64,000 bases of DNA from assembly GCA_002104945.1 (NCBI GenBank), contig MCFH01000009.1, forward strand, positions 372,001 through 436,000. Direction: 5' to 3'. Both the position numbers and the translations under genes were made by a program. Within the stretch, counting starts at the first letter, position 1, and each line of letters begins with the position of its first letter. The notes beneath the pieces were generated by a model, which was not told the origin of the DNA, searched no databases, and worked only from the letters and a program-made list of their open reading frames with translations. This stretch comes from Piromyces finnis finn. Taxonomy: Eukaryota; Fungi; Neocallimastigomycota. Shown here in pieces: positions 1,428 through 8,766 of the stretch.

Positions 1428-1754
1428 TAAGAAAAATAAAAAAAAAAAAGACAAATTAATTAATTGAAATAAAACATAAATTTCTATTATCTATATAACA
1501 TCCCATATAAATTAATTATCTTTTTTTTTTTCAAAAATTTTTTTTTTGTTCAGTATATAGATTGACATAATAGTAGGTATAATAATGTATTTGTTTTGAT
1601 AGTCCTGATACAAAATTAACATCGTCTTAATACTTTGCCAAATTATAATGATTTAATAAATTATTGATTTTTTTTTTTTTTTTGATATTGATATTATTGT
1701 TTTTTTTTATACTTTTTATAATAATTTATTTTTTTGTGATTTAATAAAAGAAAT

Positions 1755-2724
1755 TTATTCGTTCTTCTTTTCTTCTTCTTGCTTTTCTTCAGCATCATTT
1801 TCAGCCTTATCATCAACTAATGGTTGAGTTTCTTCTGGCTTAGATTCAACTGGGGCAGCAGCACCCTTACGCTTTTCAATTAAACTCTTAACAGTGGTAA
1901 CAGACTTGGTGTAACCAGTCTTACTGTATTCAACAGTCTTACCGTAGTAGGTCTTACATAATTCAACGTATTCCTTAGCAGATTCAGTTAAAGTAGAAAT
2001 AACCTTGTCAACAGTAATCTTTTCAGAACCTCTAGCCTTGTTCTTAGAATCAGTTAACTTCATAACAGTCTTGACAACAATAGTAATAATGGTGACAGTA
2101 AGGAAGACCTTTAATAAGAAGAAGGAAGCAGCAATTAAGAAAGTAATGATAGCGATAGCTAATAAATTATAAAATAAAAAATAATAAAATAATTATTAAT
2201 TTGTTCTTATTTGACTATTTTTTTTCACTTTTAAAAAAAAAAGAGAATTAATCTTATTTTTTAATTCCTTGTCAATTCATAATACTAAAATTACTTTATA
2301 TATAATAATAAAAATTATATATATTATTTTTAAGATAGTTACTTAAAACAACTAAGAACCATGGAACAAGAATTGGTGATAAAACAAGGAAGATAACTAA
2401 ACAAATAAATAATGGAATAGCGAAAACAGCAGCTAAGATACCAAAAACTGGAGCAGATAAAACAAAAGCACTGAATTTTTGAATTAAGTTTTGAAGGTAT
2501 TGAAGACCAATCTTTAAGTAGTCAACAGTCTTTCCAGTAACAGACTTTACCTTTTCTTCATTAACCTTACCATTGAAACTTAAATTCATACCGTTAATCT
2601 TTCCATTTAAAGCATCTAATTTAACAGATGCAACATCATTAAAGGATTTAACCTTTTCGTTAACAATATCGTTAACCTTGGTAAGATTTAACTTTTCACT
2701 AACAGTTCTGTTTAAGTTTTCCAT
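1755..2724 (-). CDS. Oleosin/promethin-like hydrophobic-hairpin protein, 2 exons (2724-2343, 2158-1755), 261 aa
   Basis: ORFs 2296-2724 and 1755-2063 join through a GT(aac)..(t)AG intron at 2342-2159; exons 382+404 nt = 262 codons. The central 73-aa hydrophobic stretch has one Lys and contains SPILVP. Codon usage rich in AAG/TTC/TAC, like the highly expressed genes here. Gene model solid; family call tentative. Confidence 0.8.
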
Positions 2725-3847
2725 TGTGTTTATTATTAATATTTAATTTAATATAAATACTTCTTTTATTTTAAGTTTTTTTTTTTAAAAAAAAAGCTTT
2801 ATTTCTGGTTTGTTTTTTTTTTGTTGGTTTGTTTTTGTTTTAGTTTTTTATTTTATATAAATATATATAAAATTAATTATATTTTTTTAAAGTAAGAAAA
2901 TAAAAATGATAAATAAAAAAAAAAAAAAATTATTTATTTTGAATTTATATATAAATTTTTTTAGTATTAATAGTATCATTACATTTGAATTAAATATAAA
3001 ATTTCAATTTCAATTCAATTATATGACTATTCAAATATATTGTATTATACGCAATAATATATATAAATTAATTAATTTATTCATAAAAAATTTTTTCCAC
3101 AAATAAAATTTTATAATTAATTATAATTAATAATAAATTGAAAGTCAATTTATTTTTTTAATAATACTAAAAAAAAACCTAGATGGATGAATGACGATCA
3201 TTCAGAGTGGTATTTTTATAATAATACTACATTGATATCAATGTAGTAGTATAAATGTTATAAATGCATCTATTCTTGTAGTATTTATAATTCTTGCATT
3301 ATTACTATTCATTGAATGATTGTATTATTTATTCGTTATTGTATTTATAATAATTTTTGTAATGGCTTAATTGTATTTATTATGGTTTGTATCTATATTT
3401 TGTAATGGATTGTTTTAAGCATTAAGGATAGCCAATAAAAATTTGACTTTTGGTATTATTTATTAATAAAAAAAAAAGGCTATGAACCAAGTGAAATAGA
3501 ATGATGGCTAAAAAATATAAAAAAGAAAAAAAGAATCATTAAAATATTCTCTTTTTTTTTCAATCCTTTTTCATTAGTACTAAAGAATAGATCAATATTA
3601 TGTATCCTAAAGAAAAAATAGGAATGTAAAAAGTGGGAAAAAAAAAAAAAAAACAGTGGTATAATTGTATAGTATTCTATCAAATCCTAAATTTATTTCC
3701 TAATTCATATAAATTAATTATTTATAAAAACATTAGAATATAAGTAATCTTGCCAATGAAACTTTTAATCAAAATTTATAAAAATTATTACAACTATCAT
3801 TATTGTTGTGCTTGTGTTGTTGTTGTTGTTGTGTTGTTGTTGTTATA

Positions 3848-3905
<58 letters not shown>
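3848..3905. repeat. (TTA)n microsatellite, preceded by a (GTT)n-like run
   Basis: Direct reading. Confidence 0.9.
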
Positions 3906-3907
<2 letters not shown>

Positions 3908-4974
3908 AGTTTATTAGAGATAAGAATTTTTTCTTTAATTACTCTGTTTTTTTTCTACATATAATTTAATAATAATATTTTTTTTTATTTAACCACTAGA
4001 TAAAATAATAATTAATATTTTTTTTAAGAATTATTATCTTAGTATTTTTATTCATAATAAAAGAGGTTTTATAACAAAGTCAGCTTTTTATTATTATTTT
4101 TTTTTTGTCATTAATTATTTTTAATATTCAAATAAGGAATGTAAACTATTTTATATTGCATTTATACTTTTTTTTATATATAAATTATATACGCTTTTCA
4201 TTAGTCTAGTTTTATTTTATAATTCTTTTTTTATCATCTTGTTTTTGAATTGATAATAATAAGAAAAAAACTATTTTATAAGAAATCACTATCCTTATCC
4301 AGCAGTTTAACTTTTTTTTTTTAACCTTAAAGGTATTTTTCCACCTTCCTTTTTGAGAAAGAATTATGATTATATAAAAGAAAAAAGATCCATTATTTTA
4401 ACGTATAGGTTAGATTTTTCATTTCATAGTAATATTATTTTTTTTTTTCATATCCTTTACACTAATTTTTATTTTTTACAAGATATTAAAAATCGTTATG
4501 TCTAATTACAACAAAATAATAAAAGAATACACCAACGCATACCACACACATACACACATATACCACACTACAATTCCTATTCATCCACAACTATTATGAC
4601 CTTGAAAAGTAGTTTCTTTTTTTCTTTTTTGCTTTAAATTTTTTTTATCATATGAAGAATTAAAAAAAAAATATTTTACTAGATATAGAAAATTAATATA
4701 TTACAATAGATTAACCATTTTAAATTTAATCTATTTAATATACTGAATGTATTACACAAAATTACAAAATTGTTTTTTTAATTAATAATGTTACAAAAAC
4801 AAATTAATCCTAATCAGGTAAAATGTATACATTAATGTGATTAAATTAAAATGTAATATATAAAAAAAATTGATCATCCATCCTAAACTATAAAGTAATG
4901 GCATCATTCTAATAAATGCAACAATAGTGTAATAACAGTAGAGGTACTACTACTACTAAGAGTAATAATAAACA

Positions 4975-5360
<386 letters not shown>

Positions 5361-6145
5361 ATGCTTTATAAAGATTATAACTATTGTTATTGCTATTATT
5401 ATTGTCATTATAGGTTGTATTAATCTACTCATCATTATTTATGTTGATTATCTATTATTCTATTATCTTTTATCAATGATTATATATTGTGAAATACTAA
5501 TATTTCCTTTTTTTATTAATTTTAATCTATGATGATTTTTTTTTTTACACTTTTTGATATGTACATTTTTAAAATTTTCGATATCTCTCTATGGAAATAG
5601 TATTACATTATAATCAAATTATTATTGATATTTATTTATTGTTATCATATATATTATAAATATTATAGTTTTAATTCTTTATTTGGTTAATCAATTTAAC
5701 TTGTTATTCTTATCCTACCTGTTTTATTGTTTCTTAATTCATTATTTCAAATGAATATCACATCATTAATTATTAATAGTCATAATGCTTTAATTACCTA
5801 TATTATAATTAATTTATTTAGTTTTCATCATTCATTTGAATAAAGTCACTTTTTTTTTTTAAATTAATTTTTTATTATTAAATATAGGTCATGAACTAAT
5901 AAAAATTTTAAAAATAATTATTTTTTAAATTTGATCTTTTTTTTTAATAATAATAAAATTTAAAATTTAATATTAAAATTTTAAAAATTAAATAAATTAA
6001 TTATTTATTTTCAAAAATAAAACTTTTTTTTTTTGACTTTGTTTTCCTTTCCTTTTCTTTTTTTTTTTTTAAAAAAAAAACAACAGCCTTTCTACATATA
6101 AAATATACAAAATATTGTTTATTTAATACTAAAATCACATATAAA

Positions 6146-8766
6146 ATGGAAACTTCAAATATTATTGTACAAAAATTTAGTGGCGTAACCGTTGGTTCTG
6201 CCAAAAGAATGAGAAAAGTTTTACAATTAATAAAGTATTAAATTAATATATTTATATATTTTCAAATTCATAAATATATTCATTGAAATTAAAAAAAAAA
6301 AGAAATTTAAATATAATAAATTTATTAACTCTTTAACACTTTTATTTATTCTTTATTATATATATATTGTCATTTCATTAAATATTATTTACAAAAATTT
6401 TTAAAAATGAAAATTATAATTGTACTCATTCAATTCAAATTAGAAATTCAAGTCAACAAAATAATGTCATTGTTGTCATGTCAGCTATAAGTCCAAAAAA
6501 GAAGATTCATGGAACTACCAGCAAGTAAATATAATACAATAATTTTTTTTTTCATATTTTGAATAATATCTTCAACTTACCCTTTTTTTTTTCAACCTCA
6601 TTTTAATTGTAAAATTCAATAATACCATTCATATATAAACATTTATCTTTAAAGATTAATTCAAGCTACTAGAGACTTATTAGTTAAAAAAGCAACTCAT
6701 TCATTCGAAATTTTAAATGAAATTGAAGAGAATCATATCAATATTTTAAATAAATTAATTACTGAAAATGAAGAATTAAGATTAAAAACAGAAAAGGAAA
6801 TAAGGGCTGAATGTGATGCTTTAAGAAAATTTTTAAAAGCTTTAGAAGTAATTTTATAGTCCAACACTTACACATATCTATAACAAAAAAAAAAAAGTTA
6901 TAAATTACTAAAAAAAATTTATTATTATTATTATTATTTTAAATTATATATCTATGCTATGGGTTATATATAATATATTTATATATTTATGATATAATGA
7001 ATATAATATAATGTAGATTATAAAAGAAATTACCCCAAAATCTAATGATACTATTCTTAGTACTGGTGAAAAATTAGCTGGTATTATTTTCACAGCATTC
7101 ATGAAAAATGAAGTAAATATTTTATGGTTTTTCTTTTTCTTATTTTTTTTTTAATGGTTATCTTTAATAGTTTATTCCATTAATAATTCATACTATGAAA
7201 TATAAAATCAAAATTTATAATACAGTTTTTAAAAATATTTTCTATAAATAATATATAATAGGGACTTGATACTGAATTAATTGATTTTGAAAAACTTGTT
7301 ACTGATGTCAGCGACGATTCTCTTATTGATTCAAACTTTTATATAAAAACTCTTGTTCCAAAAATTACAGAAACATTATCTAATTGCAAGGCAAAAATTC
7401 CATTAATTACTGGTAATTTTTTAAAAGAAAAGAAAACCAAATAAAAAAAAATAATAAATAAGATTAAAATATTTTCATTAGCATTTAAATTACTAATAAA
7501 AAAAAAAAAAAAAAAAAGAAAAAGAAAATTATATTAATTATTATTAAAATTTAATATTGACTAATTAACAATATTTATATTATTATGATTGATATTAATA
7601 GGTTTCATTGGTTCATTCCCATCAGGTATTATTGAAACTATTGGTAGAGGTTATTCAGACTTTACTGCTTCTCTTGTTGCTTTAGCTGTTAATGCTAAGG
7701 AAGTTGAAATATACAAACAAATTTCAGGTATTTATTCAGCTGATCCATTAATTGTCCCAGAAGCTTACGTTTTACCATACATTACACCAGAAGAAGCTTC
7801 TGAATTAGTATTTTACGGTTTAAAAACTATTAATCCATTATGTATGGATATTGCTCGTAATCAAAAAATTAGAATTAAGAGTATTGATAATCCAGAACAT
7901 CCTGGTACTTTAATTGGTCCATATAGTGAAGAATATAAAGACATGAAATCAACTGTTGTATTAATTAAAAAAGATGTCCTTATTTATAATATTCATTGTA
8001 GAAAGGGTTCTGTTGCTCATGGTACAATGAAAAAGGTTTTCGAAACATTTAATAAATTTGGTATTCAACTTGACTTGGTGGCCACAAGTCAAATGAATTT
8101 ATCCATTGCGTTAAGTAGTGATTACGATAAATTAGACTATGTTACTGCTGAATTAAAGCATATAGGAAAGGTAAATACATAATAATAATAATAACAATAA
8201 TAATAATAATAATAATAATAAGAATAAGAATAAGAATAAGAATAAGAATAAGAATAAGAATAAGAATAAGAATAAGAATAAGAATAAGAATAAGAATAAG
8301 AATAAGAATAAGAATAAGAATAAGAATAAGAATAAGAATAAGAATAAGAATAAGAATAAGAATAAGAATAAGAATAAGAATAAGAATAAGAATAAGAATA
8401 AGAATAAGAATAAGAAGAATAATATTAAAATGCTTATCTTAGATAAAAATTCCATCTAAACTATAATGTTTTTTTTTTCTATACCTTTTTAATTAATTTA
8501 AAATTAATATAATAAAAAATAAAAAGGTTTCCATTCGTCCACATATGGCTATTTTATCTGTTGTCGGAAGAAGATTAAAGAATCAAGTTGGTTTTGCTGG
8601 AAAACTTTTTACCTCTTTAGCCGAAAATAATATTAATATTCATATGATTTCTCAAGGAAGAAGTGAAATTAATATTTCATGTGTTATTAATCAAGAAGCA
8701 AAGGCTACAGCATTAAAGAGTGCTTATGATTTAATATATGATGGAAAGATTAAAATTAATAATTAA
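6146..8766 (+). CDS. HOM3: Aspartokinase-family protein (fungal HOM3-like, two ACT domains), 7 exons, divergent ATP-binding motifs
   Basis: Spliced translation METSNIIVQKFSGVTVGS..VIVVMSA..GTTSK..STGEKL..GFIG..GRGYSD..YKQISGIYSADP..ITPEEASELVFYG..MAILSVVG..MISQGRSEINISCV matches HOM3 collinearly. GT-AG introns stay in phase. Orthology versus paralogy uncertain. Confidence 0.88.
8180..8415. repeat. Intronic (AAT)n run grading into a perfect (AAGAAT)n hexamer array
   Basis: Direct reading; lies in the last intron of the aspartokinase-like gene. Confidence 0.95.

Follow-up and report, generated by a model that had tools for sequence, protein, structure and literature searches.

A Gut-Fungal Membrane Protein with an Oleosin-Like SPxLVP Turn: A Candidate Hairpin Protein of the Endoplasmic Reticulum and Lipid Droplets

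Introduction

Oleosins are considered a green-lineage hallmark. They are recognized by a proline knot, PX5SPX3P, with four invariant residues, and by a hydrophobic domain of about 72 residues that carries the turn at its centre (PMC4126676). The hairpin is supported by AlphaFold2, and the fungal counterparts that reviews list are caleosins, oil-body lipases and steroleosin-type dehydrogenases, not oleosins (PMC13247531). In stramenopiles, the proline-rich hairpin proteins LDSP and StLDP are found on lipid droplets and are regarded as functional analogues of the oleosins (PMC8100218).

Gut fungi are of biotechnological interest, and their lipid storage is almost unstudied. No literature that links oleosin with any gut-fungal genus was found. 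The window analysed here is a stretch of 64,000 nucleotides from the genome of Piromyces finnis. An earlier note on this DNA had picked out a short gene and proposed that its product coats lipid droplets, either as a divergent oleosin, as a relative of promethin or as a convergent form, and that it possibly stabilises the lipid globules of zoospores. Such a product would be the first candidate droplet coat protein in gut fungi.

The Gene and Its Transcript

The gene lies on the minus strand, has two exons and encodes the public 261-aa protein BCR36DRAFT_347027 (P0013) of P. finnis, which carries no annotation beyond hypothetical protein and on which no paper was found. The coordinates first assigned to it were correct, and the translation of both exons agrees with the public protein. 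The features of the gene are as follows:

1711..2760, minus strand: transcribed region, intron removed, from RNA contigs of runs X1-X4 (one record each)
2343..2724, minus strand: exon 1, from Met1 to the first base of codon 128; translation identical to residues 1-127 of the public protein
2159..2342, minus strand: intron of 184 nt, phase 1, GT..AG, spliced out in contigs of four runs
1755..2158, minus strand: exon 2; translation identical to residues 129-261 of the public protein
1755-1757, minus strand: stop codon, at the end of exon 2

The N-terminal amphipathic domain is encoded by exon 1, as are the first hairpin arm and the turn SPILVP; exon 2 adds the second arm together with a C-terminal amphipathic and acidic domain. 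The intron interrupts the reading frame after codon 127, six codons beyond the turn. Removal of 2342-2159, as the earlier note had proposed, is the sole excision of a single intron that gives the 261-aa protein. The same junction, 2158/2343, was found exactly in P. finnis contigs that are probably RNA and come from four runs of three studies: they join 1711-2158 straight to 2343-2760. The mRNA thus has a 5' UTR of 36 nt and a 3' UTR of 44 nt. Word depth over the gene in these contigs was 570-1317, which is a poor measure of expression.

The codon bias that had been remarked on is real and lies far above that of the other long ORFs in the window. AAG makes up 91% of AAG+AAA for Lys (3-42% in the other ORFs), TAC 100% of TAC+TAT for Tyr (7-49%) and TTC 69% of TTC+TTT for Phe (0-39%). 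The gene is present as one copy in the 56-Mb genome, and it is real, spliced and strongly transcribed. The window around it is extremely AT-rich, with an intergenic GC of 3-20%; at 4951-5400, between the gene and an aspartokinase gene, G+C drops to just 3-4%.

Distribution and Conservation of the Family

Word-index searches returned 18 full-length or nearly full-length relatives, together with four shorter sequences that are either fragments or ORFs reading through the intron. Their sources were Piromyces, Anaeromyces robustus, Neocallimastix and contigs of rumen transcripts or metagenomes. The alignment used below (A1) comprises 19 sequences with 61-81% identity to the P. finnis protein. S116, P117, L119, V120 and P121 of the turn are invariant in it, as are A91-P92-V93, P104-L105-F106, K144 and the final KKNE; the SPxxxP pattern (S116, P117, P121) is therefore kept in 19/19.

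Spliced mRNAs of other species are represented by contigs of about 1 kb with uninterrupted ORFs (L001, L044). In Anaeromyces and in two Neocallimastix assemblies the gene has a single intron of 350, 260 and 258 nt, respectively, at the same codon and in the same phase as in P. finnis. A divergently oriented aspartokinase gene with AA_kinase and ACT domains lies upstream in Piromyces, Anaeromyces and Neocallimastix, a micro-synteny that is conserved over three genera. Its positions are:

7589-8179, plus strand: AA_kinase exon of the aspartokinase neighbour in the P. finnis window
L043 1-1185, L045 1-1704 and L046 1-1659: aspartokinase gene in the loci of the relatives

When the A1 profile was searched against 1.84 billion representative proteins, no relative beyond the gut fungi was found save one bacterial protein, P0023, which is discussed below. 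A word-index protein search with the hairpin region alone returned gut-fungal orthologs only, under an E ceiling of 10 that is too strict for remote relatives. The shared intron, the aspartokinase synteny and the profile matches within the family indicate that the family is old within the gut fungi and vertically inherited. As judged by these searches, it is known only from anaerobic gut fungi (Neocallimastigomycota), and other fungi have no member that is detectable at the stringency of the profile search.

Architecture and Predicted Structure of the Protein

Residues 84-156 form a hydrophobic segment of 73 residues that contains a single Lys, the invariant K144, in agreement with the earlier description. 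Residues 84-143 are a run of 60 without a charged or amide residue; K144 follows, and another 12 hydrophobic residues lead up to V156. The SPILVP turn, encoded at 2379-2362, had been placed at the centre of the segment and is indeed central, with 32 residues of the segment before it and 35 after it. Phe, Ile, Leu and Val predominate in the arms. The flanks measure 83 residues on the N-terminal and 105 on the C-terminal side, both contain Lys/Arg, and the hydrophobic moment (muH) of 0.53 at residues 67-84 and of 0.41 at residues 151-168 and 175-192 bears out the amphipathic character claimed for both of them. It had also been observed that SPX3P is exact while the Pro upstream is displaced. That Pro, the nearest one before the turn, is P104; 11 residues separate it from S116. 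The features of the protein map to the DNA as follows:

2343..2475, minus strand: first part of the hydrophobic segment, residues 84-127, from hydropathy and residue runs, with the invariant P92 and P104
2362..2379, minus strand: SPILVP turn, S116-P121, aligned with Pfam Oleosin profile positions 42-47, which hold the SPx3P core of the proline knot
2073..2158, minus strand: second part of the hydrophobic segment, residues 128-156, from hydropathy and residue runs, with the invariant K144
1758..1769, minus strand: C-terminal KKNE, a di-lysine motif of the KKXX type, invariant in the 19 orthologs of A1
2518-2535 and 1899-1916, minus strand: copies of GKTV[DE]Y in the N- and C-terminal flanks

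The motif GKTV[DE]Y was seen in both flanks, at residues 64-69 and 209-214 (local alignment score 46). Its recurrence hints at an internal duplication or at a common surface-binding element on either side of the hairpin.

An AlphaFold2 model built with A1 had a mean pLDDT of 55, which is low confidence. Residues 92-164 were modelled as one unbroken helix (pLDDT 75-87), and further helices at 14-45, 56-90 and 177-226 all had low pLDDT. In a model of a real oleosin built with an alignment of 16 plant oleosins (A2), also at low confidence, the helix is interrupted at residue 74, directly ahead of the knot's Ser-Pro, in accord with the published support of AlphaFold2 for the oleosin hairpin (PMC13247531); mean pLDDT for the two models was 55-58. 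The unbroken helix suggests, if only weakly, that the predictor does not take the fungal segment for an oleosin-like one. A straight hydrophobic helix of 73 residues in a membrane is, however, physically implausible. Searches of the ESM Atlas yielded no feature match that could be used, and the structural neighbours that they returned were meaningless.

A Probable Hairpin Protein of the ER and Its Possible Route to Lipid Droplets

KKXX signals return proteins to the ER through COPI and have to lie on the cytosolic side. The invariant KKNE, which the earlier note did not contain and which is new here, suggests that the protein is directed to the ER. The 73-residue segment would most likely fold back at the SPxLVP turn, flanked by helical and partly amphipathic N- and C-terminal domains. 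Such an oleosin-like hairpin is probably inserted into the ER membrane with both of its ends in the cytosol, and the KKNE signal would then keep it in the ER system. From the ER, it may partition onto nascent lipid droplets and coat them as a class I (ER-to-droplet) protein. The best reading of the gene, which is held tentatively but regarded as quite possible, is that of a hairpin protein that inserts into the ER, reaches droplets and functions in the manner of an oleosin, of which it would be an analogue and not a proven homologue.

In the P. finnis genome, a DGAT2-type acyltransferase was matched with 69 and 34 bits on two exons and seipin with 73 and 43 bits, and neutral-lipid droplets can therefore be made. 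Perilipin and caleosin gave no match in this genome, which is not evidence of their absence.

The droplet-coat reading is opposed by several features. A protein resident in the ER would explain the KKXX motif, which plant oleosins do not carry, no less well than a droplet coat would. With K144 in place, residues 93-115 and 122-143 form two stretches of about 22-23 residues, the usual length of helices that span a bilayer. The unbroken helix of the low-confidence AlphaFold2 model and the absence of the first Pro of the knot also count against this reading.

An alternative that is somewhat unlikely, though a serious rival because of KKNE and the spacing of about 22-23 residues from P92 to the turn and on to K144, is that the protein resides in the ER as a two-pass or wedge-type membrane protein with no special link to droplets, for example in ER shaping or scaffolding. 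SPxLVP would then be a tight luminal turn. KKNE is a canonical KKXX and invariant, P92 and K144 bracket the two stretches on either side of the turn, and the Lys/Arg in both flanks fit an N-in/C-in topology. Weak matches to Pex24p, a reticulon-like peroxin, occur in 10 of the 19 members (best E 0.15), and an unrelated bacterial two-pass protein, P0023, aligns over 98 columns. The same explanation has to account for 73 hydrophobic residues without a polar loop, among them 12 strongly hydrophobic ones after K144, and for a turn of Ser, Pro and aliphatic residues that is poorly suited to exposure in the lumen. Moreover, no match to reticulon, REEP or another ER-shaping family was found in Pfam.

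Comparison with Plant Oleosins

Of the 19 orthologs, 18 have Pfam Oleosin (PF01277) as their best family. The highest of them scores 25.2 bits (E 1.5e-5) and another 24.6 bits; the P. finnis protein itself, at 19.1 bits (E 0.0012), stays below the gathering cut-off of 25 bits. The match spans positions 20-112 of the 113 in the profile. The separate exon pieces gave 8.1 bits (E=3) or nothing against PF01277, and exon-by-exon searches of Pfam and of PDB sequences gave noise only. A six-frame PF01277 search of the P. finnis genome found no match, which is no control, since the intron splits the domain. A match to Syntaxin_2 in two of the 19 members (E 0.0004-0.002) was taken as compositional, as were Glycophorin, Pex24p and other weak Pfam matches.

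Reference oleosins were obtained by scanning metagenome contigs with a degenerate knot pattern, which recovers genes of plant hosts; ten of the recovered oleosins were scanned with PF01277 and reached 112-162 bits, and the alignment A2 was made from 16. The scan brought up about 30 bona fide plant oleosin genes in environmental metagenome contigs (L004-L042), one of which, L041, carries two oleosin genes in tandem. The assemblies that hold them contain substantial plant host DNA.

S116, P117 and P121 of the fungal protein fall on profile positions 42, 43 and 47, as S75, P76 and P80 do in a real oleosin. The two registers are directly comparable, since neither match has a gap near the turn. V110 stands where the knot has its first Pro (profile 36). 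The P. finnis protein has the central hydrophobic domain of about 72 residues (73 here) and the amphipathic flanking domains of an oleosin, and it lacks both the full PX5SPX3P knot and a score at the Pfam cut-off. An hhalign comparison of A1 with the 16 oleosins of A2 gave 91.7% probability (E 7.6e-7, score 49, 68 columns). This alignment begins at the turn, pairs SPILVP with SPvLVP and extends into the C-terminal flank. None of the other invariant oleosin positions checked (T60, T68, P69, A81, G91, S95, W108 and Y112 of A2) was matched.

How much of this similarity depends on the order of the residues was seen from shuffled controls. Reversed profiles scored 24-29. With all A2 hairpin columns shuffled, the score was 24.4 ± 4.6, and 0/100 replicates reached the real 48.4. 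When the six motif columns were kept and the other hairpin columns shuffled, the score rose to 40.4 ± 6.1, and 10/100 replicates reached the real one. With the motif removed, the N side gave 1.5% probability, no better than shuffles, and the C side gave 3% with a score of 16.9 (shuffles 11.1 ± 2.4) over just 15 columns of polar flank. An HMM of A2 gave the P. finnis protein -4.4 bits at a composition bias of about 22 bits, not above the level of shuffles; for the best orthologs, about 10% of the motif-preserving shuffles scored as high. These controls indicate that all the detectable similarity to oleosins is that of a six-residue turn in a block of hydrophobic composition; the arms by themselves gave no signal. 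By this measure, the turn and the hydrophobic block are enough to explain the Pfam scores, and they neither prove nor disprove common descent.

Since no sequence signal survives outside the six-residue turn, analogy or a very remote kinship is the most fitting description of how the protein relates to plant oleosins. It seems improbable that the protein is a true, highly diverged homologue from the green lineage, which entered a gut-fungal ancestor by horizontal transfer from plant or algal material or persists as an older relic, and in which AT-driven drift of the amino acids left only the functional core of the knot. Such an origin would agree with the rank of PF01277 among the Pfam families and the scores of the two best orthologs, with the identity of five of the six turn residues to the S-P-x-L-V-P core in exact register, and with a hydrophobic length of 73 against 72 and a central turn (PMC4126676). 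The C-terminal flank also lies slightly above its shuffles once the knot is removed, and gut fungi live on plant tissue and are described as known recipients of transferred genes in PMC6712302. It is opposed by the tenth of replicates, in both hhalign and HMMER, that reach the real score when only the motif is kept, by the 1.5-3% probability of the arms alone, by the lack of a match at the invariant oleosin positions checked apart from S, P, L, V and P, and by the shuffle-level score on the HMM of the 16 angiosperm oleosins. In addition, no oleosin is among the proteins that the family profile picks out of 1.84 billion at E<=1e-3, and the intron position is unlike that of the plant intron, which follows a WIYK-type end of the hairpin. 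A true oleosin would also require a large early burst of change, as the orthologs are 60-80% identical across genera.

Of the divergent oleosin homologue suggested in the earlier note, the architecture, the register of the SPx3P core and the rank of the Pfam family stand; the Pfam cut-off, the first Pro of the knot and the arms speak against it. Because the tests of the full knot and of the cut-off failed and similarity in the arms is absent, the protein is not filed as an oleosin on its sequence. The data are compatible with either convergence or remote homology with the plant proteins, and a convergent form, for which LDSP and StLDP of stramenopiles are precedents (PMC8100218), is quite possible. 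SPxLVP in a fungal protein of this overall design would mark either a clean convergence on anchoring in a monolayer by a proline knot or a very old or transferred oleosin, and both bear on the targeting of hairpin proteins to droplets. If it were a true oleosin that coats droplets, it would be the first outside the green lineage; a transferred one would represent the passage of a structural organelle protein from plant to fungus. The gene is short, has abundant transcripts and lends itself readily to tests in a heterologous host.

The Bacterial Protein P0023 and Other Candidate Relatives

The single non-fungal match of the profile search, P0023, is a bacterial two-pass protein of 130 aa (E 5.3e-4, 35.9 bits). 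Its gene adjoins a YtxH gene on a bacterial contig (L047), where 3604-4670 encodes a trio of YtxH, P0023 and a 95-aa protein that resembles the yqjD-yqjE-yqjK arrangement of E. coli. In hhalign, P0023 and the fungal family gave 82% probability over 98 columns, which cover the helix before the hairpin, both arms and the Lys after arm 2. The score of 37.9 compares with shuffle means of 19.2 and, with polar positions fixed, 23.0, and 0/60 replicates of either kind reached it. The resemblance is specific for the order of the residues and could not be explained away.

That the family descends from a bacterial inner-membrane protein of the YqjE/holin-X type, acquired from gut bacteria and later given eukaryotic flanks, is nevertheless highly improbable. 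Its sole standing among non-fungal proteins, the YtxH neighbour and a score above every shuffle would favour such descent, yet P0023 is one sequence only, and no close kin of it was found in 185,579 species genomes. Its own match to Pfam Holin-X (PF07332) is weak (E 0.0015), the P. finnis protein has no match to Holin-X/YqjE at E<=10, and the turn of P0023 has no prolines and one Glu. It appears that the match mainly calibrates how high a generic combination of an amphipathic helix and a two-helix hairpin can score. Kinship with promethin/LDAF1, the remaining suggestion of the earlier note, fell away, as PF16015 is outside the five families that the P. finnis protein matches at E<=10 and also missing among the 25 Pfam families listed for the orthologs.

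Comparison with Known Systems

The YqjE/Holin-X-like P0023 shares with the gut-fungal protein an amphipathic helix, two hydrophobic helices with a short turn between them, a Lys after the second helix and an acidic tail. It differs in being half as long, in its charged and proline-free turn and in the bacterial operon context with YtxH.

ER membrane proteins with a KKXX signal carry K-K-x-x at the extreme C-terminus, as do all members of the gut-fungal family. In the classic examples, which are type I proteins, the cytosolic tail is short, whereas the gut-fungal protein has a tail of about 105 residues behind the hairpin.

The oleosins of plants and green algae (PF01277) are likewise small proteins with a hydrophobic segment of about 72 residues, an S-P-x-L-V-P core and amphipathic flanks, and they are also abundant at the transcript level. 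The first Pro of their knot is replaced by Val in the gut-fungal protein, in which P104 stands 12 residues before the Ser. The arms of oleosins are rich in Ala, Gly, Thr and Ser, whereas those of the gut-fungal protein abound in Phe, Ile, Leu and Val, with no order-specific similarity between the two. Unlike oleosins, the gut-fungal protein has an invariant Lys within the segment, longer flanks (83 and 105 residues), a KKNE C-terminus and a fungal host. The intron follows the WIYK-type end of the hairpin in oleosins and lies just past the turn in the gut-fungal gene.

The hairpin proteins of stramenopiles, compared here by description only, contain proline-rich regions that have been likened to the oleosin knot and are not an exact SPxLVP. 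LDSP of Nannochloropsis and StLDP of Phaeodactylum are class I droplet proteins outside the green lineage, as the gut-fungal protein is proposed to be.
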